A stretch of DNA of 64,000 nt from Andalucia godoyi And28 (taxonomy: Eukaryota > Protista > Jakobida), in the NCBI GenBank assembly GCA_009859145.1, contig VRVR01000023.1, positions 139,544 through 203,543 on the forward strand, in the 5' to 3' direction. Numbering within the stretch: the first letter of the stretch is position 1; every line of letters starts with the position of its first letter. Of this stretch, positions 7,739-57,473 are shown in pieces. The notes below the pieces were generated by a model. It saw nothing but the letters and a program-made list of their open reading frames with translations. It ran no database searches and was not told where the DNA came from. Both the position numbers and the translations under genes were made by a program.

Positions 7739-8043
7739 TTCCTTTCTTCTACAAGCACACTCGTACGCAAATGTCGAAAAGGAAAGGATCAGTACAAAAA
7801 GAGAAGCAAAGCAAACTCAATTCGAAGCGGTTGCACACACTGACGGTACAAAAAAACACATCGACCTGAACGGCGGAGTACTTCGAGTTTTGATAACATA
7901 ACAAACAATTTGAATCTCTGCGAGAAATAAAAAACACCGCTGCCACTTATTGCGATATGATGAAGCAATCTGAAGCGCACGCAAACAAAAACACGCCGCG
8001 GCGCTGCATTCTCGCACAGTGACGCTCATTTCTTATATTGTCC

Positions 8044-8132
8044 ATGCAACGCACCATGTACGCCACGCCCGCAACGCTGCGCAAGACCCATGACATCTCC
8101 ACCGACGCTGGGCCGCCGTCAGGAAAGATCGC
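8044..8132 (+). pseudogene. tnpA: IS607 TnpA (serine recombinase) N-terminal HTH remnant
   Basis: MQRTMYATPATLRKTHDIST / frameshift / RRWAA-SGKI; typical MerR-like HTH pattern Y-x-T-P...-ST-x-TLRRWA-x-x-GKI. Confidence 0.7.
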
Positions 8133-8370
8133 CAAGACGACAACTGCGCGGCAGCGGCTGCTCTGCAAATCGCGCGAATTCGCGGGGCGGCAGGTGTCGA
8201 TTGTGACTTGTGACGGAGGAGTGCACGTCTAAAGCGTGCGGCCGTTGCGGGGGAAATCCATCGCAAGTTGTGTGGAAGCAAGGTGCGTTTTGCTGCCCAT
8301 CGTGCAAAATGCACGATCGACCGCGATTGGAACAGTGCGCCCGACATCTACATCTGTGTTAAGAACGTCT
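8125..8370 (+). pseudogene. Fanzor2/TnpB C-terminal remnant (RuvC-II, Zn finger, RuvC-III), frameshifted
   Basis: KIAKTTTARQRLLCKSREFAGRQVSIVT..EECTSKACGRCG..CPSCKCTIDRDWNSAPDI when frames are joined. Confidence 0.85.
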
Positions 8371-8510
8371 CGCATGCCGTGGGCCGTGGTGGGGCCCACC
8401 TCCTTCCCAATCATGATATGCATGTTGTTGGGTTGCAGCATTGATTATGGGTGATCAGCGATGAATATCCGTGGCTAGTGTACAATGTAGGCGTCAACTC
8501 TCGGTCACAT
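8370..8510 (+). ncRNA. Candidate omegaRNA scaffold (family A) plus flanking guide
   Basis: Conserved right-end region shared with copy A2; GTGGGCC/GGCCCAC stem; lies downstream of RuvC-III as expected. Boundaries approximate, expression not shown. Confidence 0.5.
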
Positions 8511-8751
8511 ATTCTGAGCCCAACGGCGAGTGCATTCGCTGCACAGAAAGGCCGTGCAATAAGTCGGGTGGGTGAGAAAAAGAACCGCCTCGGCCCCCCG
8601 GAAGTCGACTCCTTCCTTTGTCATTATAGTCATCTTATGAAGAAGAAGGACGGGGGGAAAAAAAAAAAGAAAAAAAAAGGAGAAAAGAAAGAGCGTTGGC
8701 TGGACGTCCACGGAAGATGCTGCATGCATATTCGATTCCATGTCACCACGC

Positions 8752-10299
8752 TTACAGAGAATTTTCTGCATCGCTTTGGTTGCCCATGTTCAAATACCGC
8801 GAAGAAACTGTACCCATGGCCCGTTTCTGTTTAACGTACGCATACGCACCTAAAACAATAACCAGGATCAGAAAGATTCCGAGTAAAATGATGGAATACT
8901 CTTCGGCGGAGATCCCATGGTTCGCTGGATGCGCTGCTCTACTGTCATCGTGGCCATTCGCATGATGGATGCTACGGATGACGAACTCATCCATGGGTTT
9001 TCCGGAATCAGCGTCCAGCGCCGTGACGATCAGTTCGTCCCGATCGACATCAACCGTGATCTCGACGTACCCATGAAAGGCTGCATTTCGCACCGCAGAC
9101 CATTCTGGATGAGGAATTTGGAACGTCGAGACCAGTTCTCTTCCGCCAATTCCCGCAACGACATGAACGGGCGCCCGGGGCTCTTCGTAAGCGTACAGTT
9201 CCGTCTTTTGCACCAGGATTGATTTTCCATCTTCACTCATCATCACTGGAAACGATCGTTCATAGGCGTGCACATGCCCTGCGAGAATCAAATCTACTCC
9301 GTACGTACTAAGCATCCAGTCGATGTACCCCCGGATATCGAGGGCGGAGCCGTGCTTTTCGTTGGAACAAAAAAGAGGTCTATGCAACACAAGGATGATC
9401 CATGGAACACGCATTCGGTTCACTTCTTCACTCGCAGCTTCAAGGTCCGACAGCAAAAATGCGTACTGCGCAGAAGAAGGGTCGATCTGGTGCTCCGATG
9501 AAACGAAAACGAAATGCACTGGACCGACATCCAACGAGTACCAAAACTGTCCCTGTCTGAGATTTCCAGGTGTTTCGAATCGTGCAATATACGAAGAAAA
9601 CTTTGACTGATCGTCGTGAATGTCCGGCTCACGTTCATGGTTGCCAACTGCGGTCAGCAACACCCGATTGGACGCATACTGTTGGATGATTTCCGAAGCA
9701 GCATCCCAGACAGACTGTCCAGCATAATAGGAATTTGCATAGGAGATGTCTCCACCGTGCACAACCAACGAATAGCGATCGATATTGGATGCTAGACGGT
9801 CGCTTGTCCTTTGCGCAACCGCATCGGCACCCGTATCTGCGACAAATGCAAACCGGAAAATACTACCAGTCTGTTTCAGGTACTCCTGAGCGCTGGGCGA
9901 CGGAGCCGATACAAACCGGGAAGAAAACATCAGAGAGGCCTGGCCATCCAGCACAGAGTACTGAAACGTAGCTTCAGAGGTCAGATTGGTCGAGAAAACA
10001 CATTTCGAAATGGAGCGGTTCGAAAAGAGGGCCACAGTCTGTATCGCTGCTTTTGGAATCACCACAACTGGCCCATTAGGAACTTTCTGATACGCAACAT
10101 GCACATCCGAGTCATCCAAATCGAAAACTGTGTACGTGAGCACTGTGTTCCGCTCCAAATTGACGGATAAATGGACTTGGGATACGGATGGAACGAGTGC
10201 GAAGCACAATGCTGTGGGAGCGAAACTCAAAGCCACAGCTACAGCCACAGCCGCAATGTTCAAAGGAAGCCGCAGTTCCAAACAGCTACAGTGTCTCAT
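8752..10299 (-). CDS. Purple acid phosphatase family metallophosphoesterase, signal peptide and C-terminal TM helix
   Basis: ADTG, GDISYA, GNHE, VLHRP and LAGHVHAYERS metal-binding motifs. Confidence 0.9.
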   Translation of the reverse strand: MRHCSCLELRLPLNIAAVAVAVALSFAPTALCFALVPSVSQVHLSVNLERNTVLTYTVFDLDDSDVHVAYQKVPNGPVVVIPKAAIQTVALFSNRSISKCVFSTNLTSEATFQYSVLDGQASLMFSSRFVSAPSPSAQEYLKQTGSIFRFAFVADTGADAVAQRTSDRLASNIDRYSLVVHGGDISYANSYYAGQSVWDAASEIIQQYASNRVLLTAVGNHEREPDIHDDQSKFSSYIARFETPGNLRQGQFWYSLDVGPVHFVFVSSEHQIDPSSAQYAFLLSDLEAASEEVNRMRVPWIILVLHRPLFCSNEKHGSALDIRGYIDWMLSTYGVDLILAGHVHAYERSFPVMMSEDGKSILVQKTELYAYEEPRAPVHVVAGIGGRELVSTFQIPHPEWSAVRNAAFHGYVEITVDVDRDELIVTALDADSGKPMDEFVIRSIHHANGHDDSRAAHPANHGISAEEYSIILLGIFLILVIVLGAYAYVKQKRAMGTVSSRYLNMGNQSDAENSL

Positions 10300-10384
10300 G
10301 CTGAGAAGCCTCCCCACCCCAGATCACTCTGAAGAACCCTTCTCTTTGTTCGTGTTTGGCAGACGGGGAGTGCCAAGCGAGCCG

Positions 10385-11112
10385 CTGAATAATAACACGC
10401 CATTGTGTCATGCATACGGAAGGAAGTGCCCATAAACAGACACGGTCGATACTGGCCGACACTAGCACGTTTGCTTCACAGGAATTCGTGCTTACGCACG
10501 CTCGGCCAAAATTCAGCCGGTGACACAGGCTCCGCATTTTCGACACTATTTAACGCAGCATCCGTAGCCATCTATTCTATCATTCGTTGGTTTCGTTTTT
10601 TGGCTTCACTTTTTTAATTCAAACATGGGCGTGAGTGCGCTGGGATGACGCATTCGCCTACGCCTACGCCGCTCGATACAGGGTCTCCTAGGTCCCGCAG
10701 ACCTCCTAAGAGACCACGTGTCACTGCGCCTACCGCCTCTTCCTCTCGTATCTCCTGTTGCATCAATCGCTGCAACTGAGGACACGAAAGCGCCTGCTGC
10801 TAGGGCCGTCGGATTCAAAATGCACCCTTCTCAGGAACAACGTGTCACGCTGAGAAAGCGGCGGAGGAGTGCACGTCCAAATCGTGCGGGCGCTGCGGTG
10901 AGATCCATGCACGTCGAGGCGGCAGCTAAAAAGTGTTTGCATGTCCCGCGTGTAGCTCGCAGATTCATCGAGATTGGGAACGGAGAGCGGAACATTTATC
11001 TGAAGAACGCCATGAGGCGTGTTGGGGGCCTATCCCCTTTCCGGCGACGGGATGCAAGATTGAATATGCATGTCTATTCGTAGATATGCATATTCAGTGT
11101 ATAATGTAGGCG
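10385..11112 (+). mobile_element. Non-autonomous Fanzor2 element, family B copy 1 (728 bp)
   Basis: CCG at 10382-10384 then CTGAATAATAACAC; right end GTGTATAATGTAGGCG; homologous to 29074-29482 and 57047-57473. Confidence 0.9.
10625..11083 (+). pseudogene. Internally deleted Fanzor2 gene: N-terminal WED/HTH start fused to Zn finger/RuvC-III
   Basis: RAVGFKMHPSQEQRVTLRK (TnpB-type N-terminal motif), junction near 10862, then EECTSKSCGRCGEIH..GGS*KVFACPACSSQIHRDW/NGERNIYLKN. Confidence 0.85.
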
Positions 11113-11130
11113 AACATCCTCAGCGAAGCG
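10990..11130 (+). ncRNA. Candidate omegaRNA scaffold (family B) plus flanking guide
   Basis: 16-bp hairpin with TTCG loop at 11061-11096, conserved in B2; lies at the element right end. Boundaries approximate. Confidence 0.55.
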
Positions 11131-11809
11131 CAACTGTAGTCATACAAGATTTTTTTTGTCGGGTGTCGTGTCTTGCTCAGCCGCTCCTTCGCCCTCGTCC
11201 CTGCTTCGACGTTCTTCAACGGCTGTCTGTCAATTCTCGACAGAAATGGATGGGTCGATTCAGCTTGCATCTGCAATTTGCGGTTTGGTGCAGCCTGTTG
11301 CAATCTGCGGTGATCTTCCTGAGGGATGCGTACGAGCAATTGGCCAAATCCCTGACCCATTTCGCGACGATCCATGGATCTCATGCCGTTCGAACCTGCT
11401 TGCTTCCACAGAATGCTCGCTTCCAGATCGGGTGAGCACTTTCCAGTGCGTGTGCTTTGACGATCATGCAGAATGAGTCGTGCCTTTTTTTTTTCGTTTT
11501 GCCACTTTCCCCTGTTTTCTCCAGTCCACCCCCCTCCTCCTCCCCCTTGCTCGCTCAAAAGGACGACGACATTAATCACCGACTTTCATTCGACTTTCTC
11601 TTTTTTTCCCCCTTTTCTCTTCCTTTTCTTTTGCTCCTCAATTTGCACATAACAACTGGCAGTTGCGAAGTATCTTTCCGTTCCCCTCCCACAGCGAATC
11701 CTCTTATTTCTTTTTATTTAAAAGTTTTAAAGGGGTTTTTATAAAAAGCAGCGATTCTCCTCTCTCCTCCTCTCTCCTCCTCCGCTCCATTTCTTGGACG
11801 TTTTGCGAA

Positions 11810-18590: not shown

Positions 18591-18872
18591 GACATCCAGT
18601 GCTTGCAGTTTGTGTGTGTGTGTGTGCAACAGTCCCTTTTTTTACTTTGGCAACATCCAAGCAGAATAAAAGAGTTTTCCTTTCAGACATTTTTAACAAT
18701 TGACGTCGGAGGAAAAAAGCACCCGACTTGAGGCTAGCTTGCTCTGCAGACTACGGTCGCAGCCTGGCAGCCCAACCTGCCGTTGAAATGGGGGGGATTT
18801 TCCCCGCAATTGGTGCTGCCTGTACGACCTCCTTGTGAACGAATTGTTTCGCTTTCCACCATCAGCAGTCGA

Positions 18873-18912
<40 letters not shown>

Positions 18913-19342
18913 CGGCATGCATACACACACGCACGCATACACCAACTTACTTTTTATCTTGCAACAGATGAATGAATATTGAAATCAAAGAAGAATATTA
19001 AGAACAACCACAGTAACCTTTTTTTCCCCTTTAAAAGAAGAAGAAGAAGAAGATTGGTGTTGTGTTTACGATTAAGGAAGGCACAGGAGTAAGGGCAAGA
19101 AAGACACAAAGGTCTCCTCCAACGCTCAGAAAACAAGCACAGGAAACGGTGTTATTATTTTTTTAAATCACCAAGACAGTATTTTAGTCCCTTCCGTTTG
19201 ACTCGACGCCCACTCGTTCTTTCGGTTTCTTTCCCGCCGCCCCAACTTGTTGACCTAAGAAACATTTCTTTGTGGCCATTTGTTTTTGCATTTTTTTCCT
19301 TTTCTTGTTGTGGGATCGTGTTTTGAGAATCTCGAGGTGAAT

Positions 19343-25789: not shown

Positions 25790-25925
25790 GTCCCTTCTTC
25801 TTCTTCTTCTTCTTCTTCTCCTCCTCCTTAACTTATCCGCACGTATCTTATTCGTGAATAAAACTGCCTACGTGCATTTGGAACCACTTTGCGCGAAAAT
25901 AAAAATGAAACACACAGACACACAT

Positions 25926-25962
<37 letters not shown>

Positions 25963-26057
25963 AATGCATACATGTAAAAGGAGAACACATGAAAACGATG
26001 CACGGGCAAACTAGCGACTGGCGATGATGCACGCATGACCCAGGTGCTGAGAGGCTT

Positions 26058-28969: not shown

Positions 28970-29073
28970 CTCCGTTTTCAGACTCCACCAAAATAAAGCA
29001 ATAAAGATTATAAGAAAGATAATGGTATAATTATTTATATAAAAAACAAACCAATATTAGTAAAGTGCTGCCG

Positions 29074-29482
29074 TTGCATAATAACACTTCATTGTTATGC
29101 ATACGGAAGTATGCATAAGCAGACATGGTCGATATTGGTCGACACTAGCACCTTTTGTTTCACAGGAATTCGTGCTTACGCACGCTCGGCCAAAATTCAG
29201 CCGGTGACACAGGCTCCGCATTTCCGACACTCTTTAACGGAGCATCCGTAGCCATCTATTCTGTCATTCGTTGGTTTGGTTTCACTTTTTGCAGGAAGTA
29301 AAGTGTTTTGCATGTCCCGCGTGTAGCTCACAGATTGATCGAGATTGGGAACGGAGCGCGGAACATCTATCTGAAGAACGCCGTGAGGCGTGTTGGGGCC
29401 TATCCCCTTTCCGGCGACGGGATGCAAGATTGAATATGCATGTCTGTTCGTAGATATGCATGTTCAGTGTATAACGTAGGCG
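29074..29482 (+). mobile_element. Non-autonomous Fanzor2 element, family B copy 2 (409 bp)
   Basis: CCG at 29071-29073 then TTGCATAATAACAC; right end GTGTATAACGTAGGCG; keeps CPACSSQIDRDW/NGARNIYLKN and the hairpin at 29431-29466. Confidence 0.9.
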
Positions 29483-30196
29483 TTCCACTCACCACCAGTT
29501 AACCCACTCCCGCAGTCTGCACATATCGGGTTTTTGCACGCACTGCCTGCAACGAGCATTAAGCCGCAAGGTCAGCCATGTGAATCATGATATTTCGACG
29601 TTTCCAAGGCGTCTTTGGTCGGAAATCAAACAAAGGTTGCAAGAAACAAACGCATGCCGTCTTTCTGAAGCGCACTGGTAGGGCACTCCACGTTTTCCGT
29701 TCACGGCCGACGATGACACAGCGGCGTCGTGAAACTGCATGAACGTTTCCAGTTCATAGACGAAGGGTCGTGAACTCCGCGGCCACATGTGTATCGACAC
29801 GAAATGAACTTTATTCATGATGGAATCAAGCAGGATCGATGACATGCAAGAACCGCCTGAGAGAATTGCAGATGGAAACGGCAACAATGTTGCAAAGGAG
29901 GAGGGGGGGAAAGCCGGAACAGAATGCATTTCTGTGCGTGCGTCCGTGCGCCTTGAGAAACGTCCATCATTTTTTTTGAACATTTTTGACATTTCGTGCG
30001 ATACTGGTTACTGATACTGGTACTGGTACTGGCACGGTGTACGCGCAAAGCTTGGTTTGGTTTCGTGTTTATTTTCTCACTTCCCTCTGTTTGATTGCGA
30101 TGATGGTATCAGTATGGTGATGGAGTTTTTTGAGACAACGCGAGCGAAAAGGAAGCGAGGAAGAGTTTTTCTTCTTTTTCTTCTTTTCTTTCCTTT

Positions 30197-32500: not shown

Positions 32501-32715
32501 GAACTTGAACAAAAAACAATCAACAAGACGTGGTTTGCAGTTGTGCTGCACAGGTCAGCAAGGCTACAAAACAAACAAGGCGGTGGTGCCAGGTAGTTGT
32601 TGCTGCCGAGCGATTTCTCATTCATGGAAACCACATTGTCGCAGAGCAATGAGGGAAACAGGAAGGAATATTAAATTTAAACACACGCATGCACACACAC
32701 ACACACACACACACA

Positions 32716-32751
<36 letters not shown>

Positions 32752-32858
32752 CACACACACGCACATAGAAAGTATTGTACAATATACGAGGCCTCGATCG
32801 AGAAACAGTAAGTGAATTGCGGGCCAGTGCACGACGGGCAGCACACCAGTGCTTCCAA

Positions 32859-35582: not shown

Positions 35583-36533
35583 ATGGCATTGTTTCATAGG
35601 TTGATTTCAGAGGGAATGCAGCATTCTCCGAATTTCAAACGAAATCGAGCAGCTTTGCGGAATGACAAAACGGTAGGTTCTTCTTCTTCTTCTTCTTCTT
35701 CTTCTTCTGCTGCTGCTGCTGCTGCACCGGTATCACCATTACAATCCCCATCGTCGTCGGATCGGTTACCTCTTAGCCGATTTCTTGAGCTGCGAAACCA
35801 TCCAAAGCAGTCAGAACATGAAAATCAGGCAGATTTACCAAAATTTGTGAAAGCTTCCGAGTACAGAGATGCGCTGCAGTCCTCTACAGACTGGAGAACA
35901 GAGCCATCAATTCAGATTTGTACGCATTACACAACATACCTACCCATACTATACGACATGCAAGGAAGGCATCTGAACGTTCATTGCACTGTGAAGCTCA
36001 TGTCATGTGCAAGATGGTATCACTTGGAAAATCAGCAGGGAGCAAACCCGCGGCTGATGCTCCAAGTGGCCTTTGCAGACATGCCCAGTGTGTCATTTTC
36101 TGCAAATTCATACTCGAATTCACAGCTGTTTATCTCCGTATGTCCTTTCTTTTCTTTGCGACGTAACTCACTCGTTTTTTCAAAAGACTCCAGTTCAATT
36201 AGCAGTTTGACACTACAAGGAGAGCGCGTGTTTTCGATGCATCTCTCCCCGGAAAATTGCTGCGAGACTGAAACGATCCACATTTCCGAAGACGGCGAAA
36301 CAAAAGAGCAAAGGTACGGTGTATACAATGACGTGGTTGTGGAGTGGACAAAGGAACCGGCGTTTGACCTTGGGGCGGAACAGAATCCAAAGTGGATCCT
36401 TCAGTCCATTCGGTTTCACATTCCGTGCCGGAGAGTCATTGCATCTCTGTGCGACAGTTTGGCGTTGCAGCAACCGCTGCCAAATGCTTCTCCGATGGCC
36501 GAAGAGCAGAAAGTTGCAAACATTGCCGTGTGA
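35583..36533 (+). CDS. Hypothetical protein
   Basis: 316-codon ATG ORF; no recognised motif. Confidence 0.6.
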   Translation: MALFHRLISEGMQHSPNFKRNRAALRNDKTVGSSSSSSSSSSAAAAAAPVSPLQSPSSSDRLPLSRFLELRNHPKQSEHENQADLPKFVKASEYRDALQSSTDWRTEPSIQICTHYTTYLPILYDMQGRHLNVHCTVKLMSCARWYHLENQQGANPRLMLQVAFADMPSVSFSANSYSNSQLFISVCPFFSLRRNSLVFSKDSSSISSLTLQGERVFSMHLSPENCCETETIHISEDGETKEQRYGVYNDVVVEWTKEPAFDLGAEQNPKWILQSIRFHIPCRRVIASLCDSLALQQPLPNASPMAEEQKVANIAV

Positions 36534-39126: not shown

Positions 39127-42100
39127 ATGCCCGCGACTTCACATCGCATTTATAAATTGTACGTGCGAATCGAAACTTCGTCGCACGTGGAAGCATTCGC
39201 ATTAACGGTTGACGATGCTTACTCTGTGTTGGAGCTGGTTCATTTGTGCCAGCGATTCTGGTCCGTGAACCATGCTGCATCAGAACCATGGTATTTTAAA
39301 TTAGTAAGGGTGATTGAGCTGGTTGGAAAAGACAGAATTTTGTTGTTTGCAGAGGATCTGAATCATCCTGCGATCACGCGGGTTACAGATCACCACGTCT
39401 TGGAACGAGTCCCCCTCTCCCGTGAAGTGTCGGCTGCGATTACGGACACGTCGGAAGACCGCTCGTCAAAGTTCAGGCTTTCCACAGAACGAAAAGCAGA
39501 TATTTTTGACTCTGCAGAGCTCAACACGCTTGTCATTCGGCTGTGTTCGCTGGATCTGAGTGCCCCATCGTCATGGAGAGCATGCCCCGTGTTTGCATCT
39601 GCAAGCACACTATATAGAGACAGCTCTAACTCTTTCCGTGTTGTTGATGCGTTCGTCGCGCTGCATACGCTGCTCGCTTCTCCTCCTTCTGCCGCTGCGA
39701 CGGTGCTGTCAAAGATTATGGAACGATTTGAAATGGTTTCCCCTCCCGCAGAAGGTCTTTCTTTTACAGAATCCCTGTTTTTTAATTGTGTTGTGCAGCC
39801 GGAAACAAGAATGAATATTCTGCGGATTTTGAAGAGGTGGATTCTGCAGTCTCCTGATTCTTTCTTATCGCTGGAAAATCAGGTTGCTGGCGACAGACTC
39901 CGAGAATTTCTCGAGTGCATAGCACCGCAAGAAACAGGTGACGAAGCAGGAGAGGAAGATGAACAGGAAGATTCGCAGAGCGCATTCAGAAAACGCGAAG
40001 ATCTGCGGGAGAATAACGACGTTGGTGTTTTTGCTCGATCGCTGCTGCAGTTGCTGAACTCTCTTCAAAAGTTCCACACGCCTTCTATTCAATCCGCAGC
40101 GCAGTCTCGTGTCTCTGGTGCCTCCTCCTCGTGGAAGCCGTTTTCGCTTGATACGGCGAAGGTGCAGACGGACGCGAAGGCCTACGTCGAGAAGGTGATC
40201 GAGCAACTGACGATCATGGATTGGGAGTTCCTGTCACAGGTGAATTCATATGAATGGACATTTTATGATCGGGAGAGGCTCTCGGATCCGTCTGCAAAGA
40301 ACATTTGCCAGTGCCTTCGCTTTTGGAAGAACGTTCAATGCTGGGCGGTGTTGTCTGTTCTTCAAGAGGCAGACTACAAGAGTCGTGCAAGTCGATTGCG
40401 TTTGTTGTTGGCGGTCTTTCGAGGCTTGAAGTTGATCCGCAGTTATAACATGGCATTTGCCATCTGGGCCGCGATTTACCACCCCAGCATTTCCAGATTG
40501 TCCAAAACCTGGGAGTCCTTGCGTAAGGATTCTTCCAAAGAACTCGAAGAAGCCGAGTATTTTCCTGTGTGGTATCAACGTGATGTCGTCGCCGCAAACG
40601 CAATCGAACAACCGTGTGAGCCACGAACAACACCAATGTCTATCGATGACATCACGCCAATTTACCATGCTCCCCTGAGTCTTGAAAGCGCGCATCAAGC
40701 ACTAGAAGCAACACCTGCATTTGTTGGAAAAGGAAATGTGCAGTCACAGGTCAACGTCGCGCGACTGGTTGATGTTCACCGCTGGCTGTATGTTTTCTCG
40801 TCCCCAGAATCTTCTCCGGCAACACCATTTGGAAGGCTAAGGTTCACAAAGCTGGTTTCCACAGCCCCGATTGACCATATCCTATTGTCCAATGTTGAGA
40901 AGGCTGGGAATACAGCCGAGGAAGACTTTCTGCAAACGTCTGCCAAGTTGGAGCCGGACGGGGATGGGTCTCATGCCTTATATGATCGGCTGTATATTCA
41001 TTCGTTGCTGTCTATTTTCAGAAAGGCACGCATTTCTGCAGATTCTTCCAGTAAGTCCATTTTGAAAGATGAAATCAAGGAGATTCTGCGGTTTGAAAGC
41101 CATTCACAGAGTTTATTCCAAGCAGATTTTGGCAATGTAGATGATGAAAACGAACCAGACCCAGAAGATGAAAAGGACCCGTATCTCATGATGCTGAAGT
41201 ATGCAGAGGTGGCATCGTATCTTCCAGTGGAGAAGTATGTTGCAATCGCTCCGTTGTCAGGTGATATGGATCTGCACCGTGACGTCACGGTATACTTATA
41301 CTTTAATCCTGCAAATGTTCGTGACGATCCATATGCAACGTGGAAGGACGTGTTGCAGAACAAACGCGAAGCGAGGAAGTTTCCCAATGTTGACCTTCGG
41401 ACGCCCGTGCGTGCTTTTGTAGAGAGGATTTTGTACGAGATGAAGCTCTCCGAGCCCGCAGCGGAGTTCATGCTGAAATGCATTGGGTGGCATGAATTTC
41501 TGTGTGTCGACACCGTTTCCCTGGCCGATTTTGATTCCGTCCGAACCATGCTCAAGAAGGACAAACCAGTACGCTTCTCGCTGTGGACTGTGCCACTGGT
41601 GATCTTTGCATCCTTGTATCCGTTGCTTCCTCGTTACATCGATCCTGAGAAATCGGCTGTCGATCTGGACAGTGTGCCGCGCAATCGAAAGTTACTTGTT
41701 GAACAGCTGCTATTCTCAAACAAGCGGCTCATTCCTTTTGTATCCCCGGCTTCTGCAAAAAAGGATATGGAAAGAGAGTCGACGAGGTGGAATCGGGCTT
41801 TTGATGCTGCCCGAAGCCTGTCGGCATTTCCAACTGCGCAACAAAAGCTGATTCCGAATAAGGATTTTCGTTTCCCTGCTTCGGCTGTCTGTTTTCCATA
41901 CGGTGCCCCGGGCTATGGAAAACTAGAAAATTTGTGGAAGGGAGCGTTTGAGCGGAGCGGAACGGACAAGAATGCCTCGATTCACACGTTTTCGAACATC
42001 CCCATCAAGTTCACAATTCGTACTGTTTCGTCCATTCCTCTCACTTCTCCGTGCTTTGCCTTTCTTACCGGTAAGAAGGATGGCTTGCAGTCACTGCAGA

Positions 42101-44652
42101 ACGAAGTATCCCCGAACATCTCTCTGATTGCCGTTGCCGGTATTTATCACGGCGACCGGTTGCTGTGTCCTTTGCTTCGCTCTTCGTTTGTTCCAGTCAG
42201 CAGCCCCCGCTGGAATGAGTCTCTGGATGCTGAGCAGCCGTATCGCAACTTTTACGGACAAAGCAAACATTCAAGTGCCGCGGTGAACTCCAAGTCATTG
42301 TATCTGTCGTTTGGCGACCACTTTTACACAAAGACGCTCACGGTCGCCAATCTACCTGCGGGGGCTAGGCTTTGTCTCACGATCTGGGCTGTGCAGAAGA
42401 AGAAGGAAGCAAACTTTCCAGATAAGTATTTGGATCCCAGCACAGGAATGTGGAGCACATCTTCGGATTCATATTCCGCGCCTCTTCCAACTGGCACCAG
42501 TACATTTGCCACAGAAGGGGGCGTTCTTCCCTTTTATCTTCCCGTTCAGGGTCTCGAGAATTCTCCGTCTTGTCCGACGGACTTATCCGCGTCAATGCGC
42601 TACACGGTTGAAGAAATCCCAACAGATTCGTCCTGTGCGCCGCTAGGATGCGTTGCAATTCCTCTTGTGGATGAAAACGGCCATCTAATGCAAGGATCGG
42701 TTACGAAGCACCTGTGGGAGTCCCATATTGCGCATCCTATGCACACCACTGTGGAGTCGCCGGATAAGATGACGATTACAATTGACTTTGAGAAGTACTC
42801 CGACTCTCCTGTTGTCTTCCCGGAGGTCTATGCTCCGCAACCGAATGACCTTCCGTTGGAAACGTCGAACAATGACCCAAACATCGCGCAACCGGAGTTT
42901 CGGTGCTGGACAGACCGGCCGGACAGGGAGGCTCGTTGGCAAAAGCTGCGAAAGCTCATTTTTGCGGAGCTGCCTGGCCAATCTCGGCCATCCGACATTT
43001 CCGCCGCTGACAAGGTCAAACTGGATGCGCTCCTGAAGGCTCCACCTTTGAATACGATGACGATTGGTGAATGCGCGCTTGTTTACAAGTATCGCCATTA
43101 CCTACTGGACAAGCCGCACGCGCTTATCAAGTTTTTGATGTCGGTTCCTTGGAATGACCTTCGCGCAGCACGCGAAGCGTACGCTCTCTTGTGGGTGTGG
43201 TGTCCTCCTTCTCCGCTTGCTGCCTTGGAATTGCTGGACATGAGATTCACGGATCCGCATATTCGTGCGTACGCAATCGACTGTCTGAACAGGCTATCAA
43301 ACAGAGAGCTTGCGTCTGTGCTTCTTCAGCTCGTGCAAGTGTTGAAGTATGAAGCGCACAACGACTCTCCGTTGGCACGCTTCCTCGTAAAGCGCGGTGC
43401 CCAGTCTCCCGACGAAGTTGGGCACATTTTGTTCTGGCATCTCAAGGCAGAGCTGCATGTGCACACCATTGCCCCTCGTTTTGGGTTCTTGCTGGAAGAA
43501 CTTCTGCGAAACGTTGGTAGATCTGCACGCATCGGCTGGAAGCGCCAGTGCGATATGGTGCGTAGTTTATGCGATGCTGCTGAACGCGTCAAAGGCATTC
43601 CCAAGAACGATCGAGCCGCGTTTTTGCAAGCTGATCTTGTTACCATTTGCGCGAAGCTGGGTTTGAAGTGTTCATTTTCAGATGAGTCGAAGAGAGCGCA
43701 GTATCCGGACATTGTGGATCCTTCTCCGGCTCCGACAGAATACTCCCTTCCCCTGGACCCTCGAATGCGTGTCTGTGGCTTGCGTATTGATAAGTGCAAG
43801 TGTATGGACTCCAAGAAGGTCCCGCTGTGGCTGGTGTTTGACAATGCAGATCCTCTGGGAGATCCGATCTACATTATCTTCAAGTCCGGAGATGATTTGC
43901 GCCAGGATCTCCTTACTCTCCAAATGCTTCGTGTCATGGAAGGGTTGTGGATGGGAGAAGGTCTTGATCTCAAGATGAATCCGTATGGATGCGTTGCAAC
44001 CGGAGATATGGAGGGTATGATCGAAGTCGTTCTCAATTCGGACACTTCGGCGAACATTACGCGGACTATCACTGGCGGTGCAAAGGGAGCCTTTCGGAAG
44101 GATACGTTCGACATTTGGCTGCGCCAGCAAAATCCCGATTCGTTTGACACTGCTGTGGAAAACTTCAAAGTGTCGTGTGCTGCGTACTGCGTAGCGACGT
44201 ACGTTTTAGGAATTGGGGATCGGCACAACGACAACATCATGTTGACAAAGACCGGGCAGCTGTTCCACATCGATTTCGGGCACTTCCTCGGTAACATCAA
44301 ACGAAAGTTTGGAGTGAAACGAGAGCGTGCCCCGTTCGTCTTTACTCCCGACTTTGCATACGTGTTTGGCGGAGAAGGCGCCAAGAAGTACAAGGAGTTT
44401 GAGGATATGTGTGTTCGAGTATACCAGGCATTGCGCAAGCATGCCGCAATGTTGTGCAACCTGTTTGTGTTGATGCTCAGCACGGGCATACCTGAGCTCC
44501 AGCAAAAACAGGACATTGAGTACTTGCAGACCGCGTTGCAGCTGTCGATGACAGACGAGGAGGCTGCGAAGTTCTTTAAGAGTCTCATCCGAGAGTCTTT
44601 GAACTCGCGTGCCACGGTCCTCAACAACTGGGCCCATCTTATGGCGCATTAA
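39127..44652 (+). CDS. Class I-like phosphoinositide 3-kinase with N-terminal RasGEF (REM + CDC25-like) module, RBD, C2, helical and kinase domains
   Basis: Kinase: KSGDDLRQDLLTLQM, GIGDRHNDN, HIDFG; GEF-like: IEQLTIMDWEF...YNMAFAIWAAIYHPSISRLSKTW. Confidence 0.9.
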   Translation: MPATSHRIYKLYVRIETSSHVEAFALTVDDAYSVLELVHLCQRFWSVNHAASEPWYFKLVRVIELVGKDRILLFAEDLNHPAITRVTDHHVLERVPLSREVSAAITDTSEDRSSKFRLSTERKADIFDSAELNTLVIRLCSLDLSAPSSWRACPVFASASTLYRDSSNSFRVVDAFVALHTLLASPPSAAATVLSKIMERFEMVSPPAEGLSFTESLFFNCVVQPETRMNILRILKRWILQSPDSFLSLENQVAGDRLREFLECIAPQETGDEAGEEDEQEDSQSAFRKREDLRENNDVGVFARSLLQLLNSLQKFHTPSIQSAAQSRVSGASSSWKPFSLDTAKVQTDAKAYVEKVIEQLTIMDWEFLSQVNSYEWTFYDRERLSDPSAKNICQCLRFWKNVQCWAVLSVLQEADYKSRASRLRLLLAVFRGLKLIRSYNMAFAIWAAIYHPSISRLSKTWESLRKDSSKELEEAEYFPVWYQRDVVAANAIEQPCEPRTTPMSIDDITPIYHAPLSLESAHQALEATPAFVGKGNVQSQVNVARLVDVHRWLYVFSSPESSPATPFGRLRFTKLVSTAPIDHILLSNVEKAGNTAEEDFLQTSAKLEPDGDGSHALYDRLYIHSLLSIFRKARISADSSSKSILKDEIKEILRFESHSQSLFQADFGNVDDENEPDPEDEKDPYLMMLKYAEVASYLPVEKYVAIAPLSGDMDLHRDVTVYLYFNPANVRDDPYATWKDVLQNKREARKFPNVDLRTPVRAFVERILYEMKLSEPAAEFMLKCIGWHEFLCVDTVSLADFDSVRTMLKKDKPVRFSLWTVPLVIFASLYPLLPRYIDPEKSAVDLDSVPRNRKLLVEQLLFSNKRLIPFVSPASAKKDMERESTRWNRAFDAARSLSAFPTAQQKLIPNKDFRFPASAVCFPYGAPGYGKLENLWKGAFERSGTDKNASIHTFSNIPIKFTIRTVSSIPLTSPCFAFLTGKKDGLQSLQNEVSPNISLIAVAGIYHGDRLLCPLLRSSFVPVSSPRWNESLDAEQPYRNFYGQSKHSSAAVNSKSLYLSFGDHFYTKTLTVANLPAGARLCLTIWAVQKKKEANFPDKYLDPSTGMWSTSSDSYSAPLPTGTSTFATEGGVLPFYLPVQGLENSPSCPTDLSASMRYTVEEIPTDSSCAPLGCVAIPLVDENGHLMQGSVTKHLWESHIAHPMHTTVESPDKMTITIDFEKYSDSPVVFPEVYAPQPNDLPLETSNNDPNIAQPEFRCWTDRPDREARWQKLRKLIFAELPGQSRPSDISAADKVKLDALLKAPPLNTMTIGECALVYKYRHYLLDKPHALIKFLMSVPWNDLRAAREAYALLWVWCPPSPLAALELLDMRFTDPHIRAYAIDCLNRLSNRELASVLLQLVQVLKYEAHNDSPLARFLVKRGAQSPDEVGHILFWHLKAELHVHTIAPRFGFLLEELLRNVGRSARIGWKRQCDMVRSLCDAAERVKGIPKNDRAAFLQADLVTICAKLGLKCSFSDESKRAQYPDIVDPSPAPTEYSLPLDPRMRVCGLRIDKCKCMDSKKVPLWLVFDNADPLGDPIYIIFKSGDDLRQDLLTLQMLRVMEGLWMGEGLDLKMNPYGCVATGDMEGMIEVVLNSDTSANITRTITGGAKGAFRKDTFDIWLRQQNPDSFDTAVENFKVSCAAYCVATYVLGIGDRHNDNIMLTKTGQLFHIDFGHFLGNIKRKFGVKRERAPFVFTPDFAYVFGGEGAKKYKEFEDMCVRVYQALRKHAAMLCNLFVLMLSTGIPELQQKQDIEYLQTALQLSMTDEEAAKFFKSLIRESLNSRATVLNNWAHLMAH

Positions 44653-45024
44653 ATAAACATGTACACCTTTCTTGTCCCTCGTCTTTATTTGCATCCTTTT
44701 CGGTACTCTCTTTCTTTCTTTTGCATGCTTTCACCACCAAAGATCTCCGAGAGGAAGAGAGGGGAGATTTCGTTCTGATTTGGTTCTAACCGGATGGGGA
44801 AAACCTCAGTGTTAGGATTTCAAACATTCTGTCAAAGACGATGAAAACGAAATAAAACACAATTAAAATAGTTCAAAAAAAAAAACAGTTGCCAGCGCCT
44901 ACACTGTACACTAACCACGGATATTCATCGCTGATCACCCATAATCAATGCTGCAACCCAACAACAACATGCATATCATGATTGGGAAGGAGGTGGGCCC
45001 CACCACGGCCCACGGCATGCGAGA

Positions 45025-45290
45025 CGTTCTTAACACAGATGTAGATGTCGGGCGCACCGTTCCAATCGCGGTCGATCGTGCATTTGCACGATGGGCAACA
45101 AAAACACACCTTGTTTCCACACACCTTGCGATGGATTTCCTCGCAACAGCCGCACGTTTCAGACATGTACTCCTCCGTCACAAGTCACAATCGACACCTG
45201 CCGCCCCCGCGAATTCGCGCGATTTATAGAGTAGCCGCTGCTGGAATTGATAATGGCACCGCTGCTAGCCATGGATGTTGCTGCATAGTC
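45025..45290 (-). pseudogene. Fanzor2 remnants (HPWLAAVPLSI fragment; RuvC-II, Zn finger, RuvC-III)
   Basis: QRLLYKSREFAG..QVSIVT..EEYMSETCGCCEEIHRKVCGNKV..CPSCKCTIDRDWNGAPDI. Confidence 0.85.
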
Positions 45291-45307
45291 TCAGAAGCAC
45301 TGCTGAG

Positions 45308-45466
45308 AAGCAGTGCGCGTTCGACGTTTGCGAGGCAGTACATGTGATGGGAGCCGGCGTGGATGCTGCGGATCGTCCCGGTGGCGGCCCGTCGCCGGAA
45401 GGTGGCGGTAGAGATGTCATGGGCCTTGCGCAACGTTGCGGACGTGACGTACATGGTGCGTTGCAT
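45308..45466 (-). pseudogene. tnpA: IS607 TnpA HTH remnant
   Basis: MQRTMYVTSATLRKAHDISTATFRRRAATGTIRSIHAGSHHMYCLANVERALL; catalytic serine recombinase domain absent. Confidence 0.75.
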
Positions 45467-46334
45467 GGACAATAACAATAAAATAAGAAATGAGCGTCGC
45501 TGTGCGAGAATGCAGCGCGGCGGCGTGCTTATAGGGATTTCATGATCAAAATGGGGCGAAACGAATCGGGCATCATGTGACGGAGTTGCTAAGATAACAA
45601 ACGCATGTGCATGGCGCGTGGCACTGATTTTGTTTGCGTGCGCTTTACATTCCTTCATCATTCCGCAGAAAGTGGCAGCGGTTTTTCGTTTATAATCCCC
45701 CTTTTCTCTCGTTCTCTCTTCTGTGAGCAACTGCAATCTGCAAACGTGCAGTGTGCAAGCAGACTTTCACGAGGATTCGTAAGGAACGTGTCGTGTGCCA
45801 TCCTCTTCCCGAGCTGCGGTGTCACCCTTTAGTCGGTGCTGTTACCTTTGTGCTCGCGCCGATGATTAGGAAATAGGAGCACTGGCGAATGGAACGACGA
45901 AACAGCCCGATTTGCTTCGACTACCCACCAGCCTGAGCACTGTGGTTTCCTCCTATTGCCTTTGATGTCTTTCACAAGAAACGTAAAAGGCTATTGGAGG
46001 AAAACGAACCGAACATCGCTCTCTCTCTCTCTCTCTCTCTCTCTTCCCTCCTCTCTCTCTCTGACCTCGTCTTTTCTCTTTCTTTCTTGGTAAGTACCCT
46101 CCCCTTCATTAGTCTTGCAAAACACCAGCGTGAAATTCGTCATAGTCGAATCGTTTGTGCGCATCTATCATTGCGTCGACTAACTTTTTTTAGGTCTGTT
46201 TGTGTGCTTCTTTTTTTCCTTTCGTCGTCGTCGTCTTCTGTTTATTCTTCTTCTGTTTTCTGTGTTCGCCCGACATTGCAGCTGCGCAAGTATTGATTAA
46301 TGCTGTTGGCCAATTCCATTGCCGGTTAACAAGA

Positions 46335-52918: not shown

Positions 52919-52951
<33 letters not shown>

Positions 52952-52981
52952 GCAGGAAACCGCGTATCAGGAGAGAAAAAA

Positions 52982-53173: not shown

Positions 53174-53372
53174 AGGCCGTCGAGAGTCGACTCTTCCTGG
53201 GCTCCTAATGGTAACCTTCGTTTTCAGCGGCAAAATATGGGCGTTTTTTAAATTTGTGTGTATCATGTCGATGAAGCCCGTAAACAGTTTTCTTCTCCTT
53301 CTTCTTCTTCTTCCACTTCTACTACTTCTTACGGCTGCCCCCGATTATTTACTATTGGTTTTCACGGTCCCG

Positions 53373-54566: not shown

Positions 54567-54601
54567 AGCTCGAATTCAGTTGTGCTACAGAAAGTGTGTG
54601 T

Positions 54602-54604
<3 letters not shown>

Positions 54605-54682
<78 letters not shown>
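54605..54682 (+). repeat. (AG)39 microsatellite in the divergent intergenic region
   Basis: Perfect dinucleotide run read directly. Confidence 0.95.
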
Positions 54683-54687
<5 letters not shown>

Positions 54688-54959
54688 ATGCGACGACGAC
54701 GACGACTTTCACCTTGAAACACTCTTTGTTTGCTGTGAACCATACAGCCCAAACACAGCCCACGAACCATCCGCATCGGATCCGATCTCCCGAATCGAAA
54801 GGAGCGTTGCTTTGTCTGGAGCGGGCATTTTTTCGGGGAATGGATTTCCGGAATCTTCCGAAAAGCCCCGACAAGCGAGCCTCCTCTGTTGGATGACCCG
54901 AGACAGCCAACAGGTCCTTCCATCTTTGCTTGGAGTCTCGTGTACCACATGCGTAACAG

Positions 54960-56063
54960 ATGCGCATAGCAGTTGTCGGCTCAGGATTCGGAGGTTCTTC
55001 GATTGCGTATCACGTCCTCAACAACGCGTTTGCAGGATGCAGGAGCCCCGCGGTCACCCTTCTGCACAAGGGAAACGGTGATAAGCACCGCGCAGCTTGT
55101 GCATCTCTGGTGTCTGGCGGCCTCCTGCATCCCTTCACAGGCCCAAGAGCCAGTCCTTCCTGTGAAACAATGGAGTGCTTTCGTGATGCAGCAGTGTTTC
55201 TAGAAACGATCCAAGCATTGTCTTCTGTTTCGTTTGCAAAGCGAACCGAATTGCTGAAAATCGTTCCGATGTGGAGACTTCGTCCTGCGAAACGTGTCGA
55301 ACAGAACAGTTTGTTTAAAGACGCAGCAAAAAGGCATCCCGCGAGCTTGCTGTATTTGGAGAGCGTCAAGGATTGGATCCCAGATATGCAAATGGACTGT
55401 CCCGGAATACTGGTGCGTGATGCATTCTCTGTGAATGCCCCAAAGTACCTCCGAGCTCTTCACCGCGTACTGCAATCGCAGGGTTGCACATTTAAAGAGG
55501 AGAGTATCTGCAGTATCACTAATCTGTCGAACACACATGACCACGTATTTGTTGCATGCGGCAGTGGATTCACTGGAATTGCGGAACTTGCACGGCTCTC
55601 GGCGGAGCTCAAGCTCATCAAAGGCCAAACAGTGTTCTGGACAGAAAGGCATGTTAAGCAGGGAAGCAGCCCATCGATTCCTGTATTTGCACGATTTTAT
55701 TTGCATGAAGCGCCTTTTGCGGATGATACAGAGGAAGGAATGCGGTTGATGATTGGGGGAAGCACCTACGAAGAAGTAGACTCGCTGGTAGCATCCTACG
55801 AACCGCAGGAAAACAGCAGTACCAGGGAACTGCAGCATTCTTTGAAGATCATGCACCCAGAATACAGCCGGATTCCAGAAACAGCAAAGATCTGGAAAAG
55901 CGGTGTACGAGTGGCACACAGGACATCCCATTTGCCCTTGTGCGGTCGCCTCGAAGGCCCGCTGTCCAACGTCTCCTATCTTGTTGGCTTTGGATCCCGA
56001 GGACTCCTGTACCACAGTTCGTGGGGTCGAAAGGTCGTAGCGGAGGCATTTTCAACAAAATAA
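54960..56063 (+). CDS. FAD-dependent oxidoreductase, DAO/glycine oxidase-like
   Basis: RIAVVGSGFGG, ASLVSGGLLHP, KGQ, GVR, GFGSRGLL. Confidence 0.8.
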   Translation: MRIAVVGSGFGGSSIAYHVLNNAFAGCRSPAVTLLHKGNGDKHRAACASLVSGGLLHPFTGPRASPSCETMECFRDAAVFLETIQALSSVSFAKRTELLKIVPMWRLRPAKRVEQNSLFKDAAKRHPASLLYLESVKDWIPDMQMDCPGILVRDAFSVNAPKYLRALHRVLQSQGCTFKEESICSITNLSNTHDHVFVACGSGFTGIAELARLSAELKLIKGQTVFWTERHVKQGSSPSIPVFARFYLHEAPFADDTEEGMRLMIGGSTYEEVDSLVASYEPQENSSTRELQHSLKIMHPEYSRIPETAKIWKSGVRVAHRTSHLPLCGRLEGPLSNVSYLVGFGSRGLLYHSSWGRKVVAEAFSTK

Positions 56064-56207
56064 TGGCAAAAGGTAGAAAGTGAAAACAGCTGCATCTCTC
56101 GAGTGCGGTAAACCTTTCCAAACACGCGATTTTTTCGACCGGACAGTACCGGACAGCATGAGAGAGAAAGAGAGAAGGGGGAAAGAAAACTAGGGACGAT
56201 CGTCCAT

Positions 56208-56793
56208 CACCTCGGCATTAAACGATGCGCCTTTCCAGCATGGTCATAGTCTCCGCGTGCCTTTGCAAAAGCATCGGAATTCGTCTTTGCAAATTCAACG
56301 ACCTACGTGATTAACAATATCAGAAGGGAAAAAGACACGTTAGAAAAAGTGTTCCAAGCGCGGAAAAGGAAAACAATATAAATCGACATCTTGAAGCAGT
56401 AAACAAATCAGGACGAGGAATTGCGATATCCACATTCTTATCTCTCGGAATATTGGTCTTCATATCTTTAGGTCATCATTTTCTGAACTTGCCAAAAGAG
56501 TCGATCCAGAGGGAGGGGGGAGTGGAAAGGATGGAAGGGACGGCAAGGAAGAGATTACATACAATTTGCTCAGAGAGAAAGGACAACCCGTTCAAATGCG
56601 ATACGGCATGCGCAGCTTCAGCGTGTGCAGAATAGACGACAAAGGCCTGACCTTTCATCTTTTCCGACTTCTTCGTCACGATATCCAGAATTCTCCCAGA
56701 ATGCGAGAACAGCATGTACAGCAACTCTCGAAGTGTTCGCAGAGGAACGCGATCCGACAAGTTTTTGACATACACAGTGGTGCTTGATTCCAT
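56208..56793 (-). CDS. U1A/U2B''-like single-RRM snRNP protein, two exons (56793-56563; 56302-56208)
   Basis: TVYVKNL, KMKGQAFVV; GTATGT...CTAAC...TAG intron 56562-56303 joins to VVEFAKTNSD. Confidence 0.8.
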
Positions 56794-57046
56794 GATTTTT
56801 CTTAGGCCATCTTTTCCAAAAACAAGTTAAACGAGAGAAGACCAAACACGAGAAGGAAATAACAAAAATTAAATATACATTTAAAAAAAGAGGAAAGGAT
56901 AGCAACGTGGAAACAGGAAACTGACCGCGAAAAAATACTGGGGAAAGAAAGCCAGAAGTGTCAGTGTGCTGACTGGGTGTGTCAGCCTGTCACTTGATGG
57001 AGGGCAACGACTACGACTGCAGAAAGGCGCGTCCTTTGGTGATGTT

Positions 57047-57473
57047 CGCCTACATTATACCCTGAACATGCATATCTACGAATAGACATGCATCCCGTTG
57101 CCGAGCAGGGGATAGGCCCCAGCACGCCTCACGGCGCTCTTCAGATAAATGTTCCGCACTCCGTTCCCAATCTCGATCAATCTGCGAGCTGCACGCGGGA
57201 CGTGCAAATACTTTGCTTGCGCCGCTCGCGATACTCGGTCGCCTTATGGAACAAACGTTGCAAAGAGAGAAACCAACGAATGATAGAATAGATGGCTACG
57301 GATGCTGCGTTAAAGAGTGTCGAAAATGCGGAGCGTGTGTCACAGGCTGAATTTTGGCCGAGCGTGCGTAAGCACGAATTCCCTGTGAAACGAACGTGCT
57401 GGTGTCGGCCAGTGTCGACCGTGTCTGCTTATGTGTACTTTCGCATGCATGACAACGACGTGTTATTATTCAA
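57047..57473 (-). mobile_element. Non-autonomous Fanzor2 element, family B copy 3 (427 bp)
   Basis: CCG (minus strand, 57476-57474) then TTGAATAATAACAC; right end GGTATAATGTAGGCG; QRLFHKATEY and Zn finger/RuvC-III remnants. Confidence 0.9.

Follow-up and report, generated by a model that had tools for sequence, protein, structure and literature searches.

The fingerprint by which Fanzors and the cyanobacterial IS607 pro-Fanzors are recognised is an alternative RuvC-II glutamate (Ealt) in combination with a DPG motif in RuvC-I (Yoon et al. 2023, PMC10711439). Recombination of IS607-type elements involves identical dinucleotides at both ends and in the target, so that the first nucleotide of the flank is fixed and absorbed by the RNA scaffold (PMC10711439), and neither terminal inverted repeats (TIRs) nor target-site duplications (TSDs) are expected (Bao & Jurka 2013, PMC3627910). 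The right-element RNA (reRNA, or omegaRNA) of the ISXfa1 TnpB has a scaffold of ~150 nt with three stem-loops and a guide-adjacent long-range interaction, and long-range or pseudoknot pairing next to the guide is conserved in the reRNAs of IS607 TnpB and Fanzor2 (Yoon et al. 2023, PMC10711439). Protein-less derivatives have been described for the bacterial IS200/IS605 elements as palindrome-associated transposable elements (PATEs), which 'often encode omegaRNAs' and need the nuclease in trans (Meers et al. 2023, PMC10055086). Here we analyse five short intergenic segments, A to E, in a 64-kb stretch of DNA (the window), which very probably are dispersed elements in the nuclear genome of the compact, intron-poor jakobid Andalucia godoyi. 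It is likely that the segments derive from an IS607-type Fanzor2 element by internal deletion, that they are non-autonomous, and that they have kept their ends and a structured module at the 3' end.

Five copies in two subfamilies

Alignment and a repeat finder recovered the five segments at the coordinates and on the strands proposed in a first-pass annotation of the same DNA (Table 1), and they also divided them into the two groups suggested there, namely subfamily 1 (A and D) and subfamily 2 (B, C and E). The identity is 90-93% inside the subfamilies and ~77% across them. All five copies end with the 17-mer AGTGTAYAATGTAGGCG, for which five matches with at most three mismatches were found in comparison to 0.09 expected from shuffles. 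A covariance-model scan of both window strands, with the filters off, returned exactly these five copies, and no sixth copy was found in the window by this unfiltered scan. The copy count covers the 64-kb window and one further copy visible outside it, ANDGO_01483 (EukProt, P0013), which was found by protein search and represents a separate locus.

The flanks on both sides are dissimilar among all five copies, in line with the sharp stop of homology that had been noted, and the right flanks, which would be the guides, all differ from copy to copy as the annotation had said. A sequence common to B and E past the right end (AACATC...CTGYAGTC) was rejected as a part of the elements, being not significant when compared with random window pairs, and the elements thus do terminate at GTAGGCG. 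Each copy retains a left end of ~225-240 bp which opens with CG(C/T)TG, and the base before the left CG is a C in five of five (GCCG/YTG in B, C and E, ACCG/CTG in A and D). The left ends are as sharp as was claimed, but the real ends lie 2-4 nt further out than the starts first given, and homology between A and D may start as early as 7932 in A. They are not wholly family-specific either, since both subfamilies have the same CG(C/T)TG opening after a C.

Table 1. Elements, candidate scaffold modules and would-be guides in the window
Feature	Position	Strand	Remarks
Element A	7938..8493	+	Subfamily 1, 556 bp; left end CGCTGCCACTT, right end GTGTACAATGTAGGCG
Element B	10383..11112	+	Subfamily 2, 730 bp; GCCG from 10381
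Element C	29072..29482	+	Subfamily 2, 411 bp
Element D	44896..45680	-	Subfamily 1, 785 bp; homology with A up to 45686
Element E	57047..57475	-	Subfamily 2, 429 bp
A, candidate scaffold module	8372..8493	+	Stem-loop (SL) SL-a, GGGGCCCACCTCC, SL-c, terminal hairpin, GUAGGCG
B, candidate scaffold module	11005..11112	+	Minimum free energy (MFE) -45 kcal/mol, z -4.66, well preserved
C, candidate scaffold module	29376..29482	+	z -4.71, well preserved
D, candidate scaffold module	44896..45020	-	z -2.26, closing-helix mismatch like A
E, candidate scaffold module	57047..57139	-	Shortened, z -2.12, MFE fold uses GCCUAU:GUAGGC helix
A, right flank (would-be guide)	8494..8513	+	TCAACTCTCGGTCACATATT; position only
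B, right flank (would-be guide)	11113..11132	+	AACATCCTCAGCGAAGCGCA
C, right flank (would-be guide)	29483..29502	+	TTCCACTCACCACCAGTTAA
D, right flank (would-be guide)	44876..44895	-	CTGGCAACTGTTTTTTTTTT
E, right flank (would-be guide)	57027..57046	-	AACATCACCAAAGGACGCGC

Remnants of a Fanzor gene

The copies are internal-deletion derivatives which keep the 5' and the 3' regions. An intact nuclease frame is found in none of them, all five being internally deleted or frameshifted. The extent of the deletions was measured by tblastn against L001, a near-full-length relative of ~396 aa with one frameshift (Logan contig). On this ruler, D consists of residues ~46-70 directly joined to ~312-394 and B of residues ~4-38 joined to ~330-394, A contains residues ~316-395 only, and C and E residues ~354-393 only. 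The Fanzor N-terminal codons kept in B and D are absent from the first-pass annotation. The RuvC-I region, which is the site of the DPG motif, is deleted in all copies; the part with Ealt, zinc ribbon and RuvC-III is retained in A, B and D, and of this part C and E have just the zinc ribbon and RuvC-III.

After correction of frameshifts, A, B and D match PF07282 (Cas12f1-like TNB, formerly OrfB_Zn_ribbon) with 33.1, 48.2 and 35.2 bits, respectively, the gathering cut-off being 26.3 bits, and they also match the NCBIfam models IS607_TnpB and guided_TnpB, weakly. The idea that joined frames would be recognised by TnpB profiles therefore held for these three copies. A C4 zinc ribbon followed by the RuvC-III motif RD.NGA.NI is present (PF07282, 33-48 bits), and the alternative RuvC-II glutamate is situated six residues ahead of the first CxxC (ExxxxxxCxxC) in A (EECTSKACGRC), B (EECTSKSCGRC) and D (EEYMSETCGCC). 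Three motifs had been reported as common to all five copies. This is correct for CPxC...RDWNGARNI, which is found in all five after frameshift correction, but the other two are not in every copy: QRLLxKSREF is present in A and D only, and EE[CY]TSxxCGxC in A, B and D, with a trace (TEY) retained in E and none in C.

The coding part of A is a decayed Fanzor C-terminus (QRLLCKSREF..TEECTSKACGRCG..CPSCK..RDWNSAPDIY). In B, the left end and 5' region (10383-10624) are followed by an ATG at 10625 and by an N-terminal extension with a stretch (RRPPKRPR) like a nuclear localisation signal (NLS), which resembles the N-terminal extension KKRPPRVRP of the intact relative L164. The N-terminal codons FKMHPSQEQRVTLRK (10817-10861) are joined straight to AAEECTSKSCGRCGEIH...FACPACSSQIHRDW(+G)NGARNIYLKNA, and the original stop codon at 11061-11063 is followed by the right end. 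C has the left ~225 bp fused directly to the last ~180 bp, which begin with KVFACPACSSQIDRDW(+G)NGARNI and run up to the right end, and E is composed of the left ~225 bp, the trace ..ATEY.., FARPACSSQIDRDW(+G)NGVRNIYLKS and the right end. In D, ~70 decayed N-terminal codons (RALLLSSASETMQQHPWLAAVPLSI, 45319-45245) are fused to HYQFQQRLLYKSREF (45255-45211), and an open C-terminal frame of 78 aa (45181-44945, minus strand; TEEYMSETCGCC..CPSCKCTIDRDWNGAPDIY) contains Ealt, the zinc ribbon and RuvC-III. This frame is far below nuclease length, yet it could be miscalled as a gene.

An extra G within RDW/NG is common to B, C, E and ANDGO_01483, and the N-to-C deletion junction (..QEQRxTxRK../..E[EY][CT]TSK..) is identical in B and ANDGO_01483. 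The common frameshift and the common junction indicate that the family multiplied after the nuclease had died, and since it spread with a dead nuclease, the elements relied on functions in trans. C and E can be derived from the B type by further deletion, and A in the same way from the D type. The internal deletions and the common inactivating lesions bear out the earlier view that the elements are non-autonomous and have lost the nuclease, and the copies are to be regarded as relics of Fanzor2 genes and not as members of the Fanzor2 gene family.

ANDGO_01483 itself is annotated as a 'hypothetical protein' of 82 aa. It is a chimeric open reading frame (ORF) across another B-type mini-element, in which the N-terminus is fused to the zinc ribbon out of frame and is in frame again past the extra G. 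The gene call is an annotation artefact.

Family identity and intact relatives

Two proteins of the family, P0001 (a 149-aa relative) and P0047, have the mimivirus L79 Fanzor2 (9b0l) as their best PDB match (1.9e-13 and 3.6e-26, respectively), and there is no Fanzor1 chain among their PDB matches at E<=0.01. A protein search with a long query returned 823 relatives, mostly of 370-620 aa and often on ~2-kb contigs; an earlier protein search had given only short fragments because its query was short. In addition, a pattern scan brought up 196 relatives on contigs of giant viruses; these relatives are full-length Fanzor2 genes and are without the GTAGGCG terminus. The closest relatives have ~396-437 aa, and the DPG motif occurs as ALDPGVR in L001, L087 and L164.

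L164, a metagenome contig of 13 kb, carries an intact Fanzor2 of 437 aa (P0047, 406-1719), the ORF of which continues without a stop as far as the upstream end of the contig; a neighbouring gene on it has a EukProt match of only 27%. The 3' end of the L164 element (...GGGGCCTACCCCC...CAGTGTAAAATGTAGGCG) has 73-75% identity to B, C and E across the last ~110 nt. L087 (138-2191) and L097 (1501-3559), from soil-type metagenomes, are 99.6% identical for 2,054 bp and diverge completely beyond this segment on both sides. The common segment opens with ACGGTTCTG, closes with AATTGTAGGCGT, and encodes a TnpA with a Resolvase domain (77.5 bits) and a MerR-type helix-turn-helix (HTH; 28.3 bits), followed by a Fanzor2 of ~395 aa. 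This is a complete element of the IS607 type, mobile in the recent past, and its terminus is that of the window copies. The TnpA of this element spans two frames 62 nt apart, which could be a short intron or a frameshift, and L095 is an 88% relative of it at a site resembling that of L097.

GTAGGCG is found 50-110 nt past the stop codon in L002, L087, L091, L095, L097, L098, L105, L127 and L164, and the samples from which these relatives originate are of very different base composition. Because complete relatives end in GTAGGCG, the shared right end recognised in the first reading is the transposon right end of the family. The assignment to Fanzor2/IS607 which had been made from the motifs was upheld by Ealt, by L79 as the best structure match and by the TnpA-bearing relatives with the same terminus, and the comparisons support that the remnants belong to Fanzor2 rather than Fanzor1, as far as this can be read from sequence.

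The enzymes of L164 (406-1719, 437 aa) and L001 (105-1275, ~396 aa) are compact Fanzor2 proteins with DPG, Ealt and NLS-like N-terminal stretches, and they are below the size of ~500 aa given for Fanzor2 in the literature. L002 (5522-6051; GCA_027485595.1, JAIXQT010000060.1) and L003 (9971-10276) contain only the C-terminal third of a Fanzor2 belonging to this family, between unrelated genes, and L002 retains the GGGGCCTACCCC segment and ends with ..AAGTAGGCG 112 nt past the stop. Truncated copies that retain the scaffold may be common in other genomes.

A candidate guide-RNA scaffold at the 3' end

The last 93-125 nt of the copies are predicted to form four stem-loops with compensatory changes. 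The module comprises the last codons (NIYLKNA..GAYPL), the stop and the 50 nt to GTAGGCG, a layout which is identical in the intact L164. The common fold of the five copies and L164 has SL-a, GGGGCCUAYCCCC, a variable SL-c, a long terminal SL-d and the tail CAGUGUAUAAUGUAGGCG. In this consensus fold seven pairs change on both sides and yet stay paired, and 96.2% of the cells are standard pairs, a share that drops to 38-53% if the 3' partners are shifted by 1-3 columns. The covariation score was reached by none of 500 shuffles.

A covariance model (R1) built from six sequences only, i.e. the five copies and L164, matches the 3' ends of Fanzor genes, on the coding strand, in L098 (E 7.5e-7), L085/86, L095/97/87, L129, L102, L127, L103 and L091. 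These matches on distant relatives are an independent check, and a stronger one than the covariation. The terminal hairpin of L098 shares no sequence with the others (CUACCGCAUUUCCCGA...UCGGGAAAUGCGGUAG) but agrees with them in position and shape. An omegaRNA overlapping the gene 3' end and the right end had been postulated, and a conserved, covarying predicted fold is indeed found at that place.

GCCUAC complements the terminal GUAGGC exactly in nine relatives, and in B, C, E and L091 the corresponding sequence is GCCUAU. GCCUAC is encoded in GGG GCC TAC CCC, which is part of the peptide tail GAYPL common to many relatives, and it is kept at synonymous sites in contigs with 33-59% G+C. The conservation of the GAYPL peptide is probably imposed by the RNA pairing. 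The tail is encoded by GGGGCCTACCCC in L164 (1609-1758), L001 (1230-1286) and L002 (5840-6051) as well as in the window (11005-11112).

The minimum-energy folds of L164 (z -5.9) and E close the scaffold with GCCUAY:GUAGGC right before the flank. As modelled, this helix follows SL-a and encloses two hairpins. It fits the guide-adjacent interaction of Yoon et al., and the predicted pairing can be drawn either as a nested helix closing the scaffold or as a loop pseudoknot. The folds of B and C (z ~-4.7) have a stability matching that of L164. The module of A has one C.A mismatch in the closing helix and a fold z of only -1.25, and E has a 14-nt deletion in the part separating SL-c and the terminal hairpin.

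Ends and a proposed crossover site

No TIR was detected, as the comparison of the left end with the reverse-complemented right end gave no better match than shuffles, and only 6-8 of 12 positions of the left-end start motif match inside the right end. Repeats that could represent a TSD do not flank any of the five copies. CG is found at the left start and at the right finish of all five copies and of L087/L097 (ACGG...GGCGT). From these junctions we infer a CG crossover and a target-adjacent motif (TAM) that includes CCG. The elements occupy independent sites, as seen in the unrelated flanks of the five copies, in ANDGO_01483, and in the different flanks of L087 and L097.

Proposed explanation and alternatives

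We propose that an IS607 serine-recombinase TnpA acting in trans would have moved the copies by crossing over at the CG of both ends. The retained left region may act as a promoter for a short transcript which would include the scaffold and run ~15-20 nt beyond the right end into the flank. Such an RNA could be loaded onto an intact Fanzor2 made elsewhere, and the loaded Fanzor2 would then cut the copy's own empty site beside a TAM probably including CCG. Cleavage of the empty site would favour re-copying of the element, as has been proposed for TnpB and the bacterial PATEs. It is doubtful that guides continue to be used today. In view of the 7-10% divergence between copies and the three weakened scaffolds, we consider a still-active system unlikely. 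It would be a living two-part system with intact Fanzor2/TnpA in unassembled subtelomeric repeats and many guide-expressing mini-elements, for which we see only a small chance; in a minority version of it, the host would have co-opted some of the mini-element RNAs. If true, it would constitute a natural guide library programming a nuclease in trans against the empty site of every mini-element, and the first eukaryotic PATE-like homing network.

Several observations weigh against the proposed explanation. The covariation comes from only three lineages, and the same sequences were used to derive the structure. The GCCUAY:GUAGGC helix is mismatched (C.A) in A and D, and as both of its strands are otherwise invariant it receives no support from covariation. 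The scaffolds of A, D and E are barely better than shuffles (z -1.3, -2.3 and -2.1), and the terminal hairpin could be there for the recombinase to recognise the DNA, instead of, or besides, a role in the RNA. The CG crossover is read from few junctions (5+3) without an empty site, and the published IS607 example, ISXfa1, uses GG and not CG. A TnpA gene or remnant was not found in the window or in the elements (tblastn; noise only), so the copies cannot be autonomous IS607 members. The distance from the left end to the Fanzor start is only ~220-240 bp in both subfamilies, so that the element from which the copies directly derive may already have been without TnpA and have encoded the Fanzor alone. 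Two protein searches that returned the relic ANDGO_01483 gave no intact Fanzor from the same host, and the mobilising enzyme and the partner nuclease are therefore both hypothetical in this genome.

One alternative is that the copies are inert fossils: the origin would be the same, but the family would be extinct here, and the 3' module would be present only because transposition required the right end and the time since then was too short for its erasure, with no RNA made or used now. We lean slightly towards this alternative. The divergence of 7-10% within the subfamilies agrees with it, as do the closing-helix mismatch of A and D, the 14-nt deletion of E, the weak fold z-scores of A, D and E and the failure of the two protein searches and the window tblastn to find an intact Fanzor or TnpA of the host. 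On the other hand, the scaffolds of B and C equal that of intact L164 in stability, and the whole module is present in all five copies despite differing deletions elsewhere. Furthermore, the published assembly of A. godoyi omits subtelomeric scaffolds, which are mainly transposon or viral-like sequence and could harbour autonomous copies (PMC7050145). That full-length insertions have decayed independently in place, and have not spread as miniatures, would be in keeping with the different internal deletions of the five copies. Such a history is nevertheless very improbable, given the 1-nt insertion common to B, C, E and ANDGO_01483, the identical N-to-C junction of B and ANDGO_01483, and the reading of C and E as further B-type deletions and of A as a further D-type deletion.

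Two other alternatives concern the type of transposon. The strong subterminal hairpin close to the right end, together with the absence of TIR and TSD, could suggest an IS200/IS605-like Y1 system, in which case the copies would be true PATEs and the hairpin, which lies 14 nt inside the end, would be the one that the transposase recognises in the DNA. This is the least credible of the alternatives, as the complete relatives that share the terminus have a gene for a serine recombinase with a MerR HTH and not for a Y1 enzyme, the nuclease has the DPG/Ealt combination tied by Yoon et al. to the IS607 lineage, and the left end is without a significant inverted match to the right end (single test). 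Capture of Fanzor2 by TIR/TSD transposons is known in an alga and in molluscs (PMC10711439), and the stretch from the left end to the Fanzor start contains no TnpA, so the copies might also be thought of as ordinary MITEs (miniature transposable elements with inverted repeats) from a eukaryotic cut-and-paste transposon which had captured a Fanzor2*. The similarity of the left end to the reverse-complemented right end is however at the level of shuffles, no copy is flanked by a duplication, and the GTAGGCG terminus is identical to that of the TnpA-bearing relatives; we therefore regard it as highly unlikely that the copies are MITEs.

The window and the host genome

The genome of Andalucia godoyi has a size of ~20 Mb, is compact and has a majority of intronless genes (Gray et al. 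2020, PMC7050145). The 64-kb window has ~50% G+C and contains long uninterrupted reading frames which are tightly spaced on both strands. Among its eukaryotic products are a fusion of a class-I-like PI3K with a RasGEF, eIF2D and a channel of the RSN1/CSC1 type, and 9 of the 10 long ATG-started ORFs are exact singleton entries, in EukProt only. These entries and the near-copy ANDGO_01483 in the same database, taken with the published genome traits, make A. godoyi the very probable source. The fusion is encoded by a single frame of 1,841 aa (39127-44652, plus strand) with a RasGEF domain and the class-I-like PI3K domains (Ras-binding, C2, PIK and kinase), and it is an unusual pairing of a Ras activator with a Ras effector. 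No tRNAs were found in the window, a search of phage DNA using one window gene gave no matches, and Rfam gave none at the gathering score across the whole window, the five copies included.

A and B bracket a host ORF of 521 aa (8752-10317, minus strand), A being situated ~260 bp beyond its stop and B ~65 bp upstream of its start, and C lies ~100 bp upstream of a hydrolase gene (26849-28969, minus strand). Many intergenic spacers of this otherwise compact genome contain long (CA)n, (GA)n and (TTC)n microsatellites, for instance at 18859-18954, 25894-25993, 32681-32766, 35669-35735 and 54602-54685. Two window ORFs of 724 aa were considered as paralogues, and the comparison shows that they are not. 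P0014, seen on '14 contigs', was likewise discarded as a second multi-copy mini-element, being one locus sampled many times.

Novelty and implications

In the literature searched, we found neither Fanzor elements in a jakobid nor protein-less IS607/Fanzor2 derivatives in a eukaryotic nucleus. With the five segments taken as non-autonomous IS607-type Fanzor2 derivatives, the Jakobida, as deep-branching eukaryotes, would join the hosts of Fanzor2/IS607 elements, and the PATE-like lifestyle, with ends and a guide-RNA scaffold and no protein, would also have arisen from serine-recombinase elements in a eukaryotic nucleus. The natural deletions delimit the parts that seem indispensable, a left part of ~225 bp and a right part of ~110-180 bp, and provide an evolution-derived estimate of the minimal scaffold. 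The GCCUAC:GUAGGC pairing predicted across the family would account for the odd conserved GAYPL tail and set a precise boundary between scaffold and guide. The intact relatives, as compact (~396-437 aa) Fanzor2 enzymes with a defined scaffold, could be of practical interest for genome editing.

Comparison with known systems

The closest described systems are the IS607-type Fanzor2 elements (ISvMimi, ACa-1/2 and ISvAR158; PMC3627910, PMC10711439), which have the same nuclease lineage with Ealt, zinc ribbon and RD.NGARNI. Like the window copies they are without TIR and TSD, and their scaffold overlaps the gene 3' end and the right end. Complete relatives have a serine-recombinase TnpA upstream, and the intact ones have DPG. 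In contrast, the window copies are without TnpA and almost all of the nuclease, and consist of a left part of ~225-240 bp, a right part of ~110-180 bp and some coding scraps. The reRNA of ISXfa1 has no sequence similarity to the window module and absorbs a fixed flank nucleotide into the scaffold, and the apparent crossover dinucleotide, CG in the window copies, is GG in ISXfa1.

Other transposons have lost parts in comparable ways. The Fanzor1 families CRe-1/2/3 of Chlamydomonas include copies with 5' truncation and with internal deletions, and their 3' ends are in excess (Bao & Jurka 2013, PMC3627910), and are thus also deleted Fanzor-bearing elements with the 3' region as survivor. They are however Helitron2-associated Fanzor1 elements with TSDs, and many are 5'-truncated, whereas the window copies keep both ends and are of Fanzor2/IS607 type. 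TnpB-only and Fanzor-only elements (IS1341-like elements; the Fanzor1 element of SfAV) are also transposase-less and dependent in trans, but they still encode the nuclease, which the window copies do not.

It is with the PATEs that the window copies can best be compared in their presumed way of working, both being minimal and non-autonomous, with both ends and the scaffold kept and with transposase and nuclease to be supplied in trans. PATEs are bacterial and move as single strands by means of a Y1 transposase and hairpin ends, in contrast to the serine-recombinase (IS607) descent of the window copies and their place in a eukaryotic nucleus. Because of this descent, the window copies may be called PATE-like in their working and are not members of the PATEs, and without TIR and TSD the term miniature element is apt for them, and MITE in the strict sense is not.

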